Assembly (NCBI GenBank): GCA_965202585.1
Contig: OZ241829.1
Span: forward strand, 21,700,001 to 21,764,000
From: Thalia democratica
Lineage: Eukaryota
Reading direction: 5' to 3'
Length of the DNA: 64,000 bases
Below are positions 37,801-56,960 of this stretch, one piece after another. Made by a program: the position numbers and the translations under genes. The notes under the pieces were generated by a model, which had not been told where the DNA came from, made no database searches, and saw only the letters and a program-made list of their open reading frames with translations. The number at the start of each line of letters is the position of its first letter. Position 1 is the stretch's first letter.

Positions 37801-38131
37801 TTACAAATCGCTTAGTCCATGCTGATTAAAGCAGAGTCTAAAAAAGGGTTCAAAAAACTTTTCTCTTTCATTTTTCATAGAGTCACACAACCAACTGACG
37901 CAAGTGTTTGACTTAAAGTATTGTTTGATAATAGATTTTAAAAATCTCACGTTCCTTATATAGTTCCCCGTGCTTCCTTTTTTGTTGACGGACCTCAACA
38001 GCGATTCATAGAGGTCTTGCATGAACTCGCTGTCATAATGTCTTCCGCTTGGAAATGACGTCCCAGGTTGAACAGGTCTTACTGAACTTGTAGCAGTTGT
38101 GGCTCTTGTTTGTACTTCAGCAGGATTTGGT
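37801..38131 (-). CDS. Orphan nuclear-like protein, exon 2 (predicted helical C-terminal domain); spliced product 289 aa
   Basis: TTTTACAG acceptor; a 170-nt intron (38132-38301) fuses ORFs 38280..38840 and 37801..38142 in frame (NPQVR|PNPAEV). Confidence 0.7.
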
Positions 38132-38301
38132 CTGTAAAACATAATTACTTATTTTTATTTCGTATATTCTCTTGGAAAATCCTTGTAAATATTGCATTAA
38201 TTGGATACTAAATTTGTAAAATAAACAACTCAAGTAAAAAATCTTTAGTTTAAACTCGAAATTACACTTTCTAAACTAATTAATACAAAAACGCTACAAA
38301 C

Positions 38302-38840
38302 CTCACTTGAGGGTTACCGGTTGGTCGAGACAATAATGCTAGCCTTAACATTTCTTCTAGAAGTTCAACTCTTCTTGAAAGCAATTCGTTTTCAGTGTTG
38401 CTGCCTGACGATTGACTAACATGCGAACCATTATTCACTGGCCTCCCAACATTGTTATTTGCAGCGCTGACCTCTGCAACCGCTGGTCTCGCAACACTTT
38501 CTTGGACAGCACTGTCATTTTCGATGCCCTCATCAATGGACATCCCGGAATAACTGGAGTCCAAAGACAGTGAATCTTCAGCAACTTCATCGGGTCTACG
38601 GAGCACTTGCTCATCAATACGTTCTGCTTGACTGGTCAAGCCATTCCTTTTGCTAAGAGCTTTCATTCTAGCTTTAAATTGTTTTTTGATACTAGCCATT
38701 GTTTTTTTATAAATTTTCGTTTCAATCGCTATAGCTCTTTCAATGCTGTTACCTGACGATTGGCTAACATGCGAACCATCAACTACTGCCCTCGCTTTTT
38801 TTGCAATTGGTAGTTGCCTTTCTGCTTTCTTTTTTGCCAT
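38302..38840 (-). CDS. Orphan nuclear-like protein, exon 1
   Basis: Basic N-terminus MAKKKAERQLPIAKKAR, internal GSHVSQSSG duplication, coiled-coil-like ELLSRRVELLEEML. Phase-2 donor AG|GTTTGT; TATATAAAG ~165 bp upstream (~39003-39011). Confidence 0.7.
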
Positions 38841-38864
38841 GATTGTAACTTGTATGTTTGAAAT

Positions 38865-40560
38865 TAATAAAGATTCTAATTATAATGATTATTTGTAATG
38901 TTGAGTTCATCTTAACAAAAAGCACCAATAAAAGTTAGTTTAAATTACGGAATACTACACTATTAAAGTAACAACACAAATACACTTTTGGTTTATTGTT
39001 TACTTTATATACTTGATTTACCTAATTTAAATCAAAAAATTATAAAAAAGATAGTTTGTTAAGATTGTTTAAATTAACTTCTAAAGACTGATGAATTTTC
39101 ATATAGAACTTGACTTGGTTTGAAAATTTTTTCAATTCTTTGAACCTGAGCTTGCAAATTTTAAGAAAAAATTGATTAATGATCTTGTGTTATTTCTTAA
39201 AAATTGAGAATGTGAACATATCAAATGACCTATCAAAGGGTTAATAAAAGATTTGAAAAATGTTATTCCATAATTGAATCATAATTTATATGTTTACATT
39301 TGATATCTGAACTCAAAAAAGCAATAAATTGATATCTATACTATCATATAACTTTATGACTTAGATTACAAAACATTGCCTTTTGAATTTTTAGTGTTAT
39401 CAATTAAAAATTTACTTAACTTGTAAAATATTTCTGACAACTATGAACTTTTGAGATCTGTATTTACATAAAAATTAATTAAAATAGATAGCCCTTTTAT
39501 AAACACATCATAAATTTATAACTTTTCAAATTAACTTTTACCTGTAATCAGTGTTTGGCAACAACTTTAACTTTAATCTATTTATAACGTAAGGCAGCTC
39601 TAGTGCCTACTAATGTACATAGTTTAAAAAATTATTTAAAATCTTCTACGTGTGTATGCACTGCTTACAGTGCGAAAGTAATATTATTTAATTTTAATGT
39701 AATCTATTAATTTATTAAAATCAATTTTTTTTATTATCAATTAGTGCTATCAATCTTGTTTAAGTTGTGTTATGATATAACTTACAGAGACTACTTGGTT
39801 TCTTTTTAGTTATTTATTAAAAATAATACTTGAGTAAAAAACCAGCTTGTAGATAACAATTCTTTTAAATACGCGATTGTTTTAAATATAAAACTTGTTT
39901 TTTTTTTCATTTTCATTTGTCTTCTGCTTTAAAACGGAAAAGTTTTTATCTGAGATTTTCAGTTTAATATTGATAGATATTAAGTTCTTATTGTAACAAT
40001 TACAACAAAGGTAATTGGTTTTTACACATACTATTAAACCAGTTTAAAACCTTTGTAATTAAGTACAGAATGTTTAAAAGTCCACAATACTTTATGACAG
40101 ATTGTATAAAGTAATACTCAATTCCTTTTGACTTTTTTTAACAGTTTTAATAGTACAAGTATCTCAATCATACTGACACACAAATTGAACTAGTAAATAC
40201 AGCTTTTAATTATAAACAAAAATAAATGCTCATCATACAAGTTCTTAAACGTAGTAAACAACGTTAAGTAAATTAAATAATCAAATTATTTATAATAACT
40301 AAAGTAGTACATGATAACTTATAATCGCGAAACAGATATAAGACAGGTTCAAAATAAGAATTTAAAACTTAAGTTAGAAACTTATGCATGATCGACAAAC
40401 TGCTTTCTGCGGACTAATTGTGGCCCGAAAAGTAATTACTTTTTAGATGTAAAAATGTTTGTTTTGATAACTGTTAGAAATTTTACTTTATTAAAAAAAA
40501 TTACGTTTATGCTCGAAATCTAATAAATTGCTTTACCATTATTTTCAGCTAATACGAAAA
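38865..40560 (-). repeat. Inverted duplication arm A1 (partner 50635-52380)
   Basis: Reverse-complement matches throughout, e.g. gcggactaattgtggcccgaaaagtaatta (40408) vs taattacttttcgggccacaattagtccgc (50757), and catcatacaagttcttaaacgtagtaaaca (40231) vs ~50990. Confidence 0.9.
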
Positions 40561-49135: not shown

Positions 49136-49947
49136 GAATGGGTCATAATGTATGAAGACAAAATTGCATGAGATTACTAAATTGCACGAAGGGACTAAAT
49201 TGCACGAAAACAAACTTATACGAGAGTCCTTTTGTTGATGAGACCAAAATCCCATAATATTTGCTGAGTCGGCATAGAAAAATTATAAAAGTTTTATGTT
49301 TTAATTAGTTTTTAATATGTTTGGGTCAGGTGGGTTAGGGTTAACTGTATAAATATTTAAAAAAAAGTTAATTGATGATTCAGAAAATATAGGGGAAGTA
49401 CCCTTGTTTTAAAATTGGACCTCTTGCACGAGGCGAAAAAATGACATTAGGGCGAAATTGCACGATGATACTTTTGCACGTAGACAGTTTTGCACCAAGG
49501 GTCATTTTTTCACGAGAGTATAAAAAAAGATAAATATATATAAAAAATGCAGAAAAAAAAAACGAAAAAAAAGATAAATTTACTGACCGAAGGTAAAGGT
49601 TAGGTGTAACAGTGAAAGTAAAAAATATATAATAAAAATTGTTTAAAGAAAAAAATTAGTTAAAAAACTATATTAATTAAAAAGAAAAAACAAAGCTACC
49701 GACCGAGGGTAAGGATTAGGGGTAAAAATGATAGCAAGAAAAAAGAAGAAGAAAGGGTTCGGGGTAACAGTGATAGTATAAAAAAACTATTAAAAAATAA
49801 TTTCAACCCGTGCAAAATATCTCAGTGCATAATTGTCTGCTCATGAAAAAGTGTCTTTGTGCAAAAGTGACCTTTCGTGAAAAAGTGTCTTCGTGCAATT
49901 TTATTTTCGTGCAATTTTGTACGCTCGTGCAAACTTGACAGCTACCC
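49136..49947. mobile_element. Composite foldback-like/MITE element with (A/T)TTGCACGA arrays in inverted orientation
   Basis: TTGCACG repeats at 49160-49210 and 49420-49520, TCGTGCAA repeats at 49808-49932; centre has GGTTAGGG-like and ggtaacagtgatag direct repeats. Confidence 0.7.
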
Positions 49948-50634
49948 ATGATTTACACCCCTAGGTAAAATAAAACTAAACTTCAAATCAAACTTTTTTT
50001 AACTGGTAAAGTTAATATGATTGTATAAAACATGATTTTATGTTGAACTAATTTCCAAATATTTAAAAAAAATTGTATTAATGAAAAACTAACACAACAA
50101 ACTAAAAAGGGAAAAGTAATTAGTACTGTAATGCTAGCGAAAATGTTAACTGATAAGTTGATTTAACTAATTAAGTTAACTTCTCCCTAGTAATACCGTT
50201 ATCATTTACTTTTTCCATATTAGTATACTATGTTCAAATTATTTATTATTTTAACTAAATCAAACTAAAACAGTCATTGATTTAGTGAAGTAGGTATATA
50301 TTTAATAACTACTGTATACAAACCTTTCTAGTAGATTGACCTGTATGCAAATTTATTCTCTGTTTGATTATATATACTTTATCTGAGCAAAATGAGAAAT
50401 AAAACTGTAAGGTAAATTTTTTCGTACGCATAAAAATTACTTAGAAACAAAACACAACAAATATAATAATCGCAAAATAAATAGAATCATTTTGAAATTT
50501 AATAATTTCTATCGGCCATATTTTCTATAAAAAATTGCTAGAGGGCCGTAGTTATCTTTAAAAATCTAGTAATCGATATAAAATTACTAGTTTAAGCAAA
50601 ACATGTTATGAACTAAGTAATTCAAAAGCGCTAC

Positions 50635-52380
50635 AAGGAGTATTAGCTGAAAACAATGGCAAAGGACTTTATTAGATTTCAGCCTAAACGCAAGTTTTTT
50701 CAAAAAATTGAAATTTCTAATAGTTATGAAAACAAGTGTTTTTACAGCTAAAAAATAATTACTTTTCGGGCCACAATTAGTCCGCAGAACGCAGTTTGTC
50801 GATTCCTGCATAAGTTTCTAACTAAAGTTTTAAATTCTTATTTTCACCTAGACTTATATTTGTTTCACGATTACAGATTATTATGTACTAGAAAAAGTTT
50901 TTATTTTTTTGTTGGATTAAACTTTTGCACAATTATTGATAGGTTATTAAGTTATTATATATAATTTGATTATTTAGTTTACTTTACGTTGTTTACTACG
51001 TTTAAGAACTTGTATGATGAGCATTTATTTTTGTTTATAATAAAAATCTGTATTTACTAGTTTAATTTGTATGTCAGTATGATTGAAAATCTTCTATTAT
51101 TAAAACTGTTAAAAAAAAAGTCAAAAGAACTGATTATTACTTTATACAATATATCATAAAGTGTTGTGGACTTTTAAACATTCTGAACTTAATTACAAAG
51201 CTTTTAAACAGGTTTAATAGCATGAGTGAAAATAAATTTCGTTTGTTGTAATTATTACAATAAGAACGTGAAATCTATCAACATTAAACCCAAAATCTGA
51301 GATAAAAAGCTTTTCCATTTTAAAGCAGAAGACAAATGAAGAATATAAGAATCCAAATTTTATATTTAAAACAAGCGCATATTTGATAAAATCTTATCTG
51401 CAAGCTGGTTTGTTATTTAAGTATTATTTTTAACAAACAACTACAAAGAAACCAAGTAATTTCTGTAAGTTAAATTATAAAACAACTTAAACAAGTTTAA
51501 TAGCACTAATTAATAAAAAAAGAAACAAATATTTATAAAATAATAGATTACATTAAAAAGAAATAATATTACTTTCGCACTGTAAGCAGTGCATACACAC
51601 GTAGAAGCTTTTAAATAATTTTTTAAACTATGTACACTAGTATGCACTAGAGCTGTCTTACGTTATAAATAGATTAAAATTTAAGTTGTTGCAAAACACT
51701 GATTACAAGTAAAAGTAAGTTTGAAAAAATATAAATTTTAGATATGTTTATAAAAGAGCTATCTTTTTTAATTTTTATATAGATACAGATCAAAAAAGTT
51801 TATAGCTATCAGAATTGTTTTACACTTTAAGTATGTTTTTATTCGAAAATTAAGATTTAAAAGATAATATTTTGTACTCTAATTCATAAGAAATATGTTA
51901 ATATCATTTTAATTAATTTAATGCTTTATTAAGATCATATATCAAATACATTTGTATGAATTATGATTCAATCTTGGGAATACATTTAAAAGCTTTTTCA
52001 TTAATCCTTTCAGAGGTCATTTGATATGTTCATAGTGTTTATATTTAAGAAATAGTACAAGAACATTAATCAAATTTTTCTCAAGATTTGCAAGCTAAGG
52101 TTCAAAGAATTGAAAAAATTTTCAAACCAAGTCCAGTCCTGTAGAAAAATTTATCAGTTTTTAAAGTTAAACTAAGCAATGTTGGTAAACCATATTTTTG
52201 AGAAATGTTTTGATATAAATTAGTTAAATCAAGTGTATTAAGTAAACATTAAACCAAAAGTGTACTTGTGTTGTTTCTTTAATAATGAAATACTCTGTAA
52301 TTCAAACTAACTTTTATTATTGCTTTTGGTAAATTTGAACTTAACATTATAATTTACCATTATAATTATAACCTTTATTA
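50635..52380 (+). repeat. Inverted duplication arm A2
   Basis: Diverged reverse-complement copy of 38865-40560. Confidence 0.9.
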
Positions 52381-52981
52381 ACTAGGGAGGTACTAAGTTA
52401 ATTAAATGTACCAATATTTGGTAGTGATTTTCAATACAAAGTAAGTTGTTAATAGCATGTTATCTACATTAGATTTAGATAACATAAAGTTGTTGTCAGT
52501 GTATTTACGATTTGTAAGTGAGAACATCTTTTTGCTGAAACTGTTATAAAAATTTCTCTTGATTAAACTACCTGTTTAGTTCTTATGACAAACTGTCATT
52601 ATTTAGGATTGACTGATTTGAAAATATCAGTAAAATATTATTAATATTAACGATAACTAAAAAAATTCATAGAAAACTTATATTTTTTTATCTATAGCCT
52701 TAAATATTTAATTGACTTAGATTTTTGCATTCTGTGTCAACTGTTGTTAAATTTACCAACTTTTATTTAGTTTTACATTCATCATGAAGCATACTACCAA
52801 GACAATGATAATAAGCACTTTAATACTAAACACTGAAGTACTTAATTAATACGTATATATTTAAAGCCATAACTTATTGTAAACCTACACACGGAATTTT
52901 TTTCTTAAGTATTTAACATGAAAAATATCATTGAGCTAAAGGAATTTTTCCAAAGAAATGGATAACCATTGACCAAAATAA

Positions 52982-53094
52982 AACAAAAGAGCCTTTGGAA
53001 CATCAAACGGTCAGTGGGAGGCGTACTTACAACACAGGCTGGACAATGGCAAGCACAACTGGAAGTACATAAGTCCGCTAGGAAAAGAATATCG
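52982..53094 (+). CDS. MBD-like domain exon (start uncertain; possibly pseudogenised)
   Basis: Frame reads ...GQWEAYLQHRLDNGKHNWKYISPLGKEYR; phase-2 GC donor CG|GCTAGT. In-frame ATG at 52958 is followed by TGA 52970 and TAA 52979. Confidence 0.6.
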
Positions 53095-53463
53095 GCTAGT
53101 TGACTTATCAATTATTGATATTCTAGTAAAATTAAGAATACATTATAATAAAAATATTTTTTATCACTAAGACAAGCTTTACTAAAACATCAAACTGAAT
53201 ACAAATAGAAATGTATTGTAATACATTTAAATTAGCTAACTGTTTTTAAAATTAATAAGTATCTCACTCAAGCTCTTCCCAATAATGTAATTATTATTTT
53301 AAAAATCCGCTATGTTGTTCATTTATTAGTATTTTTTTACACACATTTAGAGATTTATTGTTTAAAAATGTAAAAAACTCTCAAGAAATGAAGTTGTTAG
53401 TATTTTTTTCTTTAAACCTAGTTAATTTTTTAAATAGGGTTATAAAACTACTAATATTTACAG

Positions 53464-53757
53464 ATCATTGTCAGAGGTTATCAGAGAGTACAGAATGCAT
53501 CATTTGAACAACTTCACAAACTTTCTCGATATCCGATCAGTGAACAATGGGCAGGTTGCACTGAGTGAAATTGATTCGACAACGGATGATGATGAAGACT
53601 TGCAAGATGAAGAAGAGACTACAGAACCTGCGCAAGAGGTTGGTGGCAACAGCGCTAATGCGACCCGCACTGATCCTGCGCAACTGGAAGCACCAACGGA
53701 GAATGCTTCGGTTGCAAATGGAAAGACCGGAAAAGACGCTGTAGGCAGTCCAGGCAA
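53464..53757 (+). CDS. MBD-like gene, next exon (SLSEVIREY plus acidic low-complexity linker)
   Basis: TTTACAG acceptor completes YR|SLSEV. Donor is either AA|GTAAAT after 53757 or AG|GCAAGT after 53753. Confidence 0.7.
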
Positions 53758-54844
53758 GTAAATTTTTGAAAAGTCTAAGAAATGTGTCAATTGGTTGTGC
53801 GATCATCAGATTATGTTTATATGTTATAATCTCACTTCTTATGCATTTTAAGTTGTAGCCACAGGTGTAAATTTTATGTTTAAGTTACATTTTTAGCATT
53901 TTACTAAGTGTTTATAAAGTACTGAATGTCTTTTTATAAGTTTGTGTTTATATTGAAAGTTGCTTACTAACAATTTATTAGTTACAGTCATATTTTGTTT
54001 TTATAAAATGTGTTTCTTTATAATGTGTCATATTGTCTTATTTTTTGAATAAATAAGTATATATAAACAATATAAATATGAATATATAAATATTATTTTT
54101 TTTAGTTGTTAATTTTTGCTTAGTTGTTCTACATATTTATATATTAAAGTAATAGTAAGTAATAATATTGTTATGCATCATACAGTTTTCAAATCAAATT
54201 TAGTTTACCAAAAAAAAATATTTAGCTTGGCTTGAGACTGACTATAGAGAAAAATTTTTATTAATAAACACTTTAATGGTTGTTAATGCTATATATTTAT
54301 AATGCTATCCGAAATTTTATAAATCATAGTTTTAAACTTTATAAAACTAATAATTAAGTTTAGTTTATATGTGATAAAATTATGTATGTGTTTAAACAGG
54401 TATAACAAAAGATCAATTTAAGTTATTAATCTTATGCTAGTTTAATAACATTTTAAGTGATACATTTCTTTAGATACACTATCCGTTTGTTCAGCTTTTA
54501 CAGTCCTTAAGCTCGAATAGTAAGAGTATTTTACTTTTTTTTCGAGTTTAGTTCACATATTAAAAAACTTTTAATGCTAATCCAAGCTTTTTTCTTCCAA
54601 AAGTGGCAACTTTGATTAATCAGGATTATAAAATACAAAGAGTCTTATTATGGCTTCTAACAAAAGCTTTTAATAAAACTAAAATAAAAAATGATCTTAT
54701 CAGCACCAAAAACTTTAAAAAATAATTTTTATTAAAATGAAAAAGATTGTTATAATATTTTTTCTGTATTTTTTTAATACTTTGTACTTAAAAAGCCAAC
54801 AGTGTATTTTAAACCTTTTTTTAATAGTTTGCTGTATTAATAAT

Positions 54845-56960
54845 TTGTGCTAAACAATTTCGAAATGAGATGAATTGGATTAATATATAAGCAAAGTCTT
54901 TCAGTAAATACTCAATTAATTCATTAACCAGAAATCACGAAAATAAGACCTGCTTCAAATTCAAACTTTTTTAGTGGTTGTTACTACTGTAAATTTAGCA
55001 TGAACGTTTAACAATACTAAAAGTTACGTTTTATACATTAATATAGTACTTATCATTGTACTAGATTGCTCAACTTAAATTCAACTTTTGTTAAATCTAG
55101 GATATTTAAGTTTTTTTGAGACTTATATTTTTATACAGTTTAATGAATACTGTTTGTATTTATCAATACATACATGTAGAATGAAGATAAATAGTATGTA
55201 CACACTTATTACTGATAGTTGTTTGTGGTAATTAAATTGGGCATCTTTCGTTTTCAAACTTTGATAAGTTGTTAATACTTAAAGCAAAATAACGTTTGTT
55301 GAATTTGAACTATTTGCGTACAAATAGAATAGTTTTGCATAGATAACTTATATTGAAAATAATTACTATATTAATACAATTAAAACCTGTAAAATATCTA
55401 ATTGGAATACTGATGTAAATAATTTGTATAACTGAAACTTATAAGCTTGTAATCTTTTGTTTAATATACCAAGAAATGTTATTCGATTATTTTTATAAAA
55501 ATGTAATGTCTTACTAATAATCACAAAAAATTTAAAACTTTAATACTTTTTTTTATAAGATCAGAGCAACGATCTAAAACTATGAATTAGTTAGACTGTT
55601 ATGACTTATAGTTTTTTATAGTATAAAGTATATTTAAAAGTTTAAAAAAGTCTTTTTCATTATTATAAAACTTTTTATTTTTTTAACTAATTCTCTAGCA
55701 ATAGCACTATACATTTTTAATTTTAATTTGAATTTATTTATAATTTTTTGCATTATTGTTTTTTCTTAAGTTTGTCCATCGTCTTATGTTTATTTTATTT
55801 AACAGGCCTGAAGATCCCTTAGGGGAGAAACATTGTAGCCTTTGTAAATAAATAAATTTAAAAAAAAAAAAATTAACTTATAGTTTTTAAGTTTTCTAAA
55901 CTAAATTTGACAAAAACAAGAACAAAAAAATTCAAAAGTAGTTTTAAATAGTTAAAAAAATGTTGTGGTCATTAAATTATTTAGATACAAAGGTACTAGT
56001 TAAATTGATATTAAGTTTAAGTAAGATAGTATTTGTAAATAACTAATTTCAAGAACTGAAAAACTAAATAATTTTAAAAACTCTTCAGAATAAAATTAAA
56101 TTTATACGCATCACTAAAACTACATTCTGTATGTTAATATGAGGTAAAAAAAACTTTCTTACTTATAATATCTATTTTAGACAATTCTAAAATAAAAAGT
56201 TTACCAAAAACCATTAAAATTAAATTTAACTTAAAATAAAAGCAAAAAACAACTTGAGTTACTTTGAAATAAATAATACTTACTAGTCTAAGAATATTTT
56301 TAATATATAATTATACTTGCTGTGGTCATTAAATTTATAAAGACATAAATATTTTAACAAGTAAAATATGTTTTTTGCTACAGTAAAAAATTAAAAGGTA
56401 AATTGTCAAAGTTTAATTGTAAATATTAAGTTGTTAAACAAAACTGTGGCAATATACCTAACCTATTTTTAAAACAATATAGTTATTCGAGATCATAAAT
56501 TCATGAAAGTTTAAGATTTTAAATTAAAATATTTTGCTATTTACAAACATCACAAAACTCTAATAAAAGTAATGCATTTAGTTTATAAAGTTTTTAAAAA
56601 ATACTTAAAGTAAACATTTTGAATATTTTTATAACTAAAATTTCAATGTCGCGAGGTTGAATAGCTTAGGATAAAAGTTCTTGTAATCGTAAAACCGACA
56701 ACAACGGATATTCGAGCTAAGATACTTATTGATTATGAATATAATGTTATTTTCGTGAACTTTAATCTATGTTACAACTAGCGAAACAAAAATGCAAAGA
56801 AAATATTTTCTAAAAATCGAAAAGACTAAGAAAAGCCTTTGGAGAAAAGTAAAATATTTTTACGGCTAAAGTAAATGTTTTAAAGTTGCCAATATGCTAG
56901 TGCAAAAAAAAAAACAAATGAATAAACTTATTTTAGTTAATTTGTTTTTTATACACTATA
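54845..56960 (+). repeat. Direct duplication C1 (partner ~62120-64000)
   Basis: gcatgaacgtttaacaatact.aaagttacgtttt at ~54999 and ~62276; aagaaaagcctttggagaaaa at ~56828 and ~63864. Confidence 0.9.
55806..55851 (+). CDS. Candidate terminal exon of the MBD-like gene (PEDPLGEKHCSLCK*)
   Basis: TTTTATTTAACAG acceptor; phase-2 reading is compatible with the GT donor after 53757; local GC island. Confidence 0.4.

Follow-up and report, generated by a model that had tools for sequence, protein, structure and literature searches.

A rearranged, probably inactivated member of a tunicate gene family with a distantly MBD-like module in Thalia democratica

A 64,000-nucleotide stretch of the genome of the pelagic tunicate Thalia democratica, referred to here as the window (GenBank assembly GCA_965202585.1, contig OZ241829.1, positions 21,700,001 to 21,764,000 of the forward strand; G000 C5:21,700,001-21,764,000 in our genome coordinates), carries two exons whose joined peptide faintly resembles the MBD domain. 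The segment at 52956-53761 (positions given without a chromosome are in window numbering) most likely represents the 5′ portion of a gene that belongs to a lineage-specific tunicate family. We favour the reading, with a probability of roughly 0.6, that this copy is a rearranged family member that was recently inactivated. An initial annotation of this DNA had proposed a stand-alone MBD-like gene assembled across a GC-AG intron and had mentioned decay as an alternative. It is decay that now appears to fit best with the combination of a GC donor, a deletion allele, the lack of a recognizable start exon, a shortened exon 2 and an inverted 3′ half.

Two exons of a multicopy tunicate gene family

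The features on which this reading depends are as follows.

52956 to 53094, plus strand: exon 1, the N-terminal module of the family, entered at the acceptor ccaaag|AAATGG (between 52955 and 52956)
52982 to 52984, plus strand: frameshift site, where the reference is one base short of the family frame
53095 to 53463, plus strand: intron of 369 nt, phase 2, with donor GCTAGT (GC, not GT) and acceptor tttacag
53464 to 53761, plus strand: exon 2, shortened; its first base completes an arginine codon and is followed by SLSEVIREYRMHHLNNFTNFLD, an acidic stretch and the stop codon TAA at 53759-61

Direct reading and translation recover the frame described in the initial annotation, NKRAFGTSNGQWEAYLQHRLDNGKHNWKYISPLGKEYR (also read as ...GQWEAYLQHRLDNGKHNWKYISPLGKEYR), which ends at 53094, and both of the splice sites named there are present (CG|GCTAGT at 53094/53095 and TTTACAG|A at 53463/53464). 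When the exons are joined, the peptide ...GKEYRSLSEVIREY... is obtained as described, open to the TAA that ends exon 2. The nearby GT at 53099 was correctly set aside as a donor, as its use shifts the frame and leads to a stop after 34 codons. Exons 1 and 2 have GC contents of 0.51 and 0.60, respectively, versus ~25% in the surrounding DNA, and constitute the sole GC islands for several kilobases around. The genome as a whole (802 Mb) is likewise ~25% GC.

A DNA search of the genome located a paralog 75 kb downstream of the window copy (C5:21,827,810-21,834,500). Its start exon, called exon 0 (MVKAKKTG...), reads MVKAKKTGKSDLVPEDPAKQVPAV and ends at the donor GTAAGT. Exon 1 of the paralog, of 140 nt, is entered at cag|AGATGG and encodes RWIPIDQKKIDRAFGLTKGRWEAYFQHRLDNGQHNWKYISPKGEKY, and the junction that follows, CG|GTAAGT, lies exactly at the junction position of the window copy. 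Exon 2 is entered at ttacag|A, opens with SLSMVIREHHMHHLNNFTNFLD and runs for 592 codons, after which comes a last open reading frame (ORF) of 113 codons. Exon 1 of the window copy is 77.5% identical in DNA sequence to that of the paralog and can be aligned with nine other copies. Its length in the reference is 139 nt, versus 140 nt in each of the paralog, a relative from the Tara Oceans metagenome and an allele from another sample (X3), both described below.

Protein and profile searches of the genome identified a further 35 to 45 exon 1 copies, arranged in tandem clusters on several chromosomes. All of the ~45 genome matches stop at the same intron position, and there is no intronless copy among them. 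The 582-nt Tara Oceans contig k127_939472 (ENA ERZ907808; L035), from a marine metagenome, bears a sequence closely related to exon 1, with the same boundaries (acceptor cag|AAATGG, donor AG|GTGAGT). The family is therefore present in at least one further pelagic species. Furthermore, the intron position shared by the family copies and the Tara relative means that the exon join is right and that the position is ancestral. The window copy also matches the exon 1 motif of the family, W..(I/L)(D/S)Q..V..AFG...G.W.A.......D......P (E 1.2e-14, positions 11-49). Judged from these sequence comparisons, exons 1 and 2 are genuine coding sequence and are correctly joined, as had been proposed; the junction falls at the family-conserved intron position, and the MBD-type profile matches described below require both exons.

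The description of this gene as standing alone is not supported, as it is one of ~45 copies and family genes normally extend beyond the MBD-like part into a long charged linker and a three-helix module at the C terminus. The family protein is predicted to begin with an N-terminal module of ~70-80 residues, comprising a strand, a helix and a β-hairpin followed by a helix after the conserved intron. Next would come the long charged linker, with the C-terminal three-helix module behind it in many members.

Searches beyond the genome returned little. Exon 2 had no match in a set of 5.8 billion proteins, and the exon 1 profile run against 1.84 billion representatives found seven exon-sized ORFs on metagenome contigs and no annotated full-length relative. 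Bacterial repeat proteins that matched the exon 1 profile were rejected as chance matches. Within the genome, two near-identical MBD-like exons (L018 and L019, at C1:94,422,805 and 94,423,636) are found on one strand at a distance of 831 nt; exon 2 is shortened to 56 codons behind L018 and is full (133 codons) behind L019.

Frameshift allele, GC donor and inverted 3′ half

The initial annotation noted that the only in-frame ATG is followed by two stops. The ATG at 52958-60 is indeed followed in frame by TGA and TAA, but it is not a start codon, and the family frame enters exon 1 at the acceptor rather than at this ATG. The two stops arise from the absence of one base near 52982-84 in the reference. 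Read from the acceptor, the reference encodes 38 codons and then encounters a stop (TAA, 53070-72).

The allele at 52982-84 was read in three samples by means of the DNA runs X1, X3 and X4. In X3, which comes from a sample other than that of the reference, an A>G change at 52982 and a T inserted after 52983 yield KWITIDQNKIKRAFGTSNGQWEAY..., such that exon 1 is fully open from the acceptor. The X3 contig over 52298-53637 carries both changes at full depth, and it retains the GC donor and an exon 2 that is identical except for one synonymous change at 53530. The frameshifted reference allele is matched by an X1 contig (52104-53681, identical over 1.6 kb) and by an X4 read (52843-52993) from a third sample. 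Thus, the deletion in the reference is real and derived, rather than an assembly slip.

No counterpart of the paralog start exon was found in the window, where the search gave only 12-nt chance matches, and the 3 kb that precede exon 1 contain neither a start-exon homologue nor a GC island. The GC islands at 49.4-50.0 kb were considered as exons and rejected because they are repeat-derived. The region at 49143-49950 contains short ORFs of a 'TKLHE/NCTK' type in an inverted-repeat pair (49182-49223 and 49891-49932), and these resemble a repeat element rather than exons.

The window copy carries the only GC donor seen in the family. At the equivalent position, GT is present in all nine of the other copies with a readable donor (L008 and L010-L017, with L018 and L019 being near-copies of L012) and in the Tara relative, with the sequences GTAAGT, GTGCAC, GTCTGT, GTTAGT, GTTTAG, GTTTGT and GTGAGT. 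Of the features that define the family intron, namely phase 2 after an R, W or T codon and a GT donor, the window copy retains position and phase and has GC as its donor. This distribution indicates that the GC donor is a derived T-to-C change at +2, and the GT donors across the family suggest ordinary splicing here. The usual context of a GC donor is AG|GCAAGT. The exact junction strings of the window copy and the paralog are absent from metagenome contigs, a result that is uninformative.

In humans, GC accounts for about 1% of donors (10.1101/829010). One report on human +2T>C (GT>GC) donors states that only ~15-18% of these still yield any normal transcript (PMC8375439), and highly non-canonical splicing in tunicates has been reported for the Fritillaria lineage (PMC13326754).

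Exon 2 of the paralog is matched at the window copy only over 53443-53529 (76%) and 53578-53702 (93%), and the remainder is absent downstream. A 3′ half of a family gene is present elsewhere in the window, next to one arm of an inverted duplication.

37801 to 38840, minus strand: 3′ half of a family gene, with a 186-codon ORF (38840-38280) and a 113-codon ORF (38142-37801)
38864 to 40555, no strand assigned: left arm of the inverted duplication, which ends 23 nt away from the ATG that opens the 186-codon ORF on the minus strand
50640 to 52381, no strand assigned: right arm of the inverted duplication, ending 575 nt upstream of exon 1

The minus-strand segment is 87.5% identical in DNA sequence to the 3′ part of the paralog, with a synonymous divergence (dS) of about 0.1. 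Its 113-codon ORF holds the C-terminal three-helix module of the family, of which the genome has at least 38 copies. An AlphaFold2 (AF2) model of this module is a three-helix bundle with a predicted local distance difference test score (pLDDT) of about 85, and the module matches no Pfam family and no AFDB cluster. At 11 other loci, the module follows the MBD-like exon on the same strand at a distance of 0.9-8.3 kb, and it is because these loci keep the same-strand order that the window arrangement, in which the module is on the opposite strand and 15 kb upstream, is considered aberrant.

Between the two arms, identity is 82% over 1758 nt. An explanation by one inversion that broke within exon 2 was abandoned on finding the duplicated inverted arm, and an inverted duplication of the whole gene with complementary losses would fit better than a simple inversion. 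The arms flank ~10 kb that contains a gene for a UBE2J-like E2, which, together with a CaV-beta gene, is among the neighbours in the window.

The initial annotation also offered a possible last exon with the ending HCSLC (55806-55851). This proposal fails, as the sequence lies inside a repeat and is out of phase with the sole plausible donor, at 53753.

55624 to 55925, no strand assigned: very high-copy repeat, not part of the gene, containing the proposed last exon at 55806-55851

Word depths in this interval are 27,862 and 42,889 for X1 and 25,709 and 46,049 for X3, versus ~40-240 elsewhere. The donor in question is a second GC donor look-alike, CAG|GCAAGT, which occurs in near-perfect context at 53753/53754 and shares bases with the exon 2 stop codon; downstream of it, no plus-strand exon was found.

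Relation of the module to the MBD superfamily

Neither exon piece alone matches Pfam at E <= 10. The joined peptide matches DUF7028 (E 4.7e-5, 23.7 bits) and MBD (E 0.004, 17.1 bits), with both matches spanning the junction. For a set comprising the intact allele, the paralog and three members that are 40-50% identical to them, DUF7028 is matched by five of five (E 9e-5 to 0.018) and MBD by four of five. Over the spliced family members, E values range from 4.7e-5 to 0.018 for DUF7028 and from 8e-4 to 0.12 for MBD. Three reversed sequences used as controls gave no match at E <= 10.

The Pfam gathering cut-offs are 21 bits for MBD (PF01429) and 27 bits for DUF7028 (PF22970). All of the family scores fall below them, at 17.1 and 19.3 (both window copy), 12.4 (paralog) and 17.5 (L011) bits for MBD, with none for L012 and L015, and at 23.7, 22.8, 21.3, 15.4, 22.2 and 19.6 bits for DUF7028. 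A comparison with PF01429, which the initial annotation had suggested as a check, thus gives a junction-spanning MBD match with a score under the curated cut-off. The bona fide MBD2/3 of this genome itself scores only 25.1 bits on PF01429.

Profile comparison with hhalign, in which 14 family sequences were set against the MBD2/3 of the genome and three close relatives, gave a probability of 65% (P 6e-5), and a thinner profile gave 41%. The alignment places GKHNWKYISPLGKEYRSLSEVIREY against GKCQVRFTSPDGEVFYNKSQLVKKL, which is the β3-β4-helix stretch of MBD2/3. For this C-terminal part, it reproduces the residue mapping to MeCP2 made earlier, in which the equivalents of R111 and R133 are kept, D121 is replaced by N and Y123 by K. 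The set of four residues that contact methyl-CpG (MeCP2 R111, D121, Y123 and R133) is consequently incomplete in the window copy, and some members (L012 and L015) have W or T at the R133 position. In a language-model comparison, exon 1 had MBD clusters as its neighbours, with a weak score of 0.82.

Other searches did not retrieve this relation. An AF2 model of the half encoded by exon 1 alone shows a strand, a helix and a hairpin (pLDDT 84; the MBD helix is encoded by exon 2), and this half model had no MBD match in a Foldseek search of pdb or in pdb_via_wide (best Z 2.9), with nothing above noise in either. Family profiles run against PDB sequences matched no solved MBD and returned only chance rows of P450 and dehaloperoxidase. 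An exon-wise scan of the genome with the Pfam models for MBD and DUF7028 did not recover the family.

Together, these profile matches make a true, distant kinship to the MBD superfamily probable, with the hairpin and helix part forming a distant MBD- or DUF7028-like element. The family would probably bind nucleic acid or chromatin. Canonical methyl-CpG specificity of the module is unlikely.

The genome also contains C5-methyltransferase genes. Three single-ORF copies of 873-878 codons with full-length domain matches lie in tandem at C1:49,968,705-49,997,951, and a further, multi-exon match to C5 DNA methyltransferase lies at C6:56.53 Mb. Intronless tandem copies are unusual for an animal.

Standing of the window copy and comparison with known systems

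Exon 1 of the intact window allele differs from that of the paralog by 16 synonymous changes over 25.5 sites (dS 1.36, near saturation) and by 16 nonsynonymous changes over 112.5 sites (nonsynonymous divergence, dN, 0.158), giving a dN/dS value of 0.12. For the first 23 codons of exon 2, dN is 0.147 and silent sites are saturated. When the Tara relative is used as an outgroup, a hand count assigns five amino-acid changes to the window copy and four to the paralog. The low dN/dS value and the similar lineage-specific counts indicate that purifying selection acted on the window copy throughout almost its entire history, and any inactivation would therefore be recent.

On the reading that we favour, the window copy was maintained by selection for most of its history and would then have been disabled. 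Its donor has changed from GT to GC, the reference allele of exon 1 has lost one nucleotide, and no start exon is recognizable. Exon 2 is shortened, and the C-terminal half is inverted 15 kb off, beside the inverted duplicate of the upstream region. Loss of function is the most likely consequence of these changes. Several observations weigh against this interpretation. Exons 1 and 2 are fully open in the X3 sample, neither the two acceptors nor the frame of exon 2 has been damaged, GC donors can function, and a short AT-rich first exon may have escaped detection. The low dN/dS value requires that inactivation be very recent. In addition, the MBD relation is sub-threshold and is unseen against PDB sequences and in the fold searches with the exon 1 half.

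A live short gene is possible, although clearly the less probable account. Here the GC-AG intron would be spliced in carriers of the intact allele, translation would begin in an upstream start exon, and the reference would represent a segregating null allele. The product would be a 'reader-only' shortened paralog of about 150 residues, consisting of the MBD-like module and an acidic tail. Some tunicate lineages splice highly non-canonical introns (PMC13326754), and the family donors are loose past the GT (GTGCAC, GTCTGT and GTTTAG), which suggests a tolerant spliceosome. Also in keeping with a live gene are the intact exon 1 of X3, with the same GC donor and an exon 2 identical in its encoded protein, the dN/dS value of 0.12 with matching counts of lineage-specific changes, and the retention of both acceptors. 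However, no other donor examined is GC, and the surrounding sequence here, CG|GCTAGT, departs strongly from AG|GCAAGT; the null allele is present in two of the three samples, and the start exon was not found. As weak evidence, no sequencing run recorded as RNA contained this stretch. Such a gene would also have to do without the linker and the C-terminal module that are retained at 11 other loci.

Gene fission is an unlikely explanation. It would entail a head-to-head duplication of the whole gene together with 1.76 kb of upstream sequence, followed by complementary loss that left two expressed half-genes. The right half would provide the MBD-like part by way of the GC-AG intron, and the left half would provide the linker and three-helix part from its own ATG, with a null allele of the MBD-like half-gene still segregating. 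In its favour, the inverted arms (82% over 1758 nt) end 575 nt before exon 1 and 23 nt before the ATG of the 186-codon ORF, the two halves are complementary relative to the paralog, and the last ORF of the left copy has a dN/dS value of 0.2. Set against this are the frameshift, GC donor and missing start of the right half, a dN/dS value of 0.87 for the 186-codon part of the left half, and the ~780 nt of paralog exon 2 that are found in neither half. Finally, chance open frames with a chance MBD resemblance, as the Pfam scores under the curated cut-offs might suggest, are refuted as an origin for this locus by the conservation of both exons and their boundaries in ~45 paralogs and another species, by the GC islands and by the dN/dS value of 0.12.

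If the window copy is the recently inactivated family member that we propose, the locus itself is probably a gene relic that matters little, and the family matters more. This pelagic tunicate has ~45 copies of a module with an MBD-like core from which two of the four canonical contact residues are gone and to which an N-terminal element has been added. If the module binds DNA, this would represent a large, fast-evolving and lineage-specific expansion of chromatin readers. The window copy is useful in that its conserved intron confirms the exon join, that it carries a GT-to-GC donor change alongside a segregating frameshift, and that a recent inverted duplication is preserved beside it. This copy might offer a natural experiment on how well the species tolerates GC donors.

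Compared with its paralog, the window copy is alike in exon 1, in intron position and phase, in the start of exon 2 and in an acidic stretch that is 93% identical. It differs in its GC donor, in an allele that has lost 1 nt, in a shortened exon 2 and in the absence of exon 0, and in having its C-terminal module inverted 15 kb away. The human +2T>C variants resemble the window copy in that a single base has changed at an otherwise ordinary donor; of those human variants, ~15-18% retain some normal splicing (PMC8375439).

DUF7028 is the top Pfam match for four of the five spliced members, at profile positions 46-81 (E 4.7e-5 to 9.3e-4), with the exception of L011, for which MBD ranks above it. 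The family differs from DUF7028 in scoring 15-24 bits and in never aligning to the N-terminal 45 positions of the profile. A literature search on the DUF7028 family found no paper. An MBD-like gene outside the family studied here (L027, C5:61,151,382-61,152,083), a 234-codon ORF starting MEFPRGWRIEVKT..., scores 26.5 bits for DUF7028 and 13 bits for MBD. In this gene, the residues matched by DUF7028 positions 45-78 are those matched by MBD positions 12-51, and one Atlas cluster has both families.

Relative to the MBD family (PF01429; MeCP2 and MBD1-4), the present family scores 12-19 bits, has a loop that is three residues shorter and carries an extra conserved N-terminal strand and helix (W-x4-Q...AFG) with no MBD counterpart. 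The likeness lies in a shared pattern, GxW...R, the shortened loop and (W/V)KY-I-S-P-x-G-x-x-(Y/F)-R-S-x-x-E/x-V, which aligns to β2, β3, β4 and helix 1 of the MBD. The window copy further keeps the equivalents of the two arginine fingers, and animal MBDs are split by an intron, as is the module of this family.

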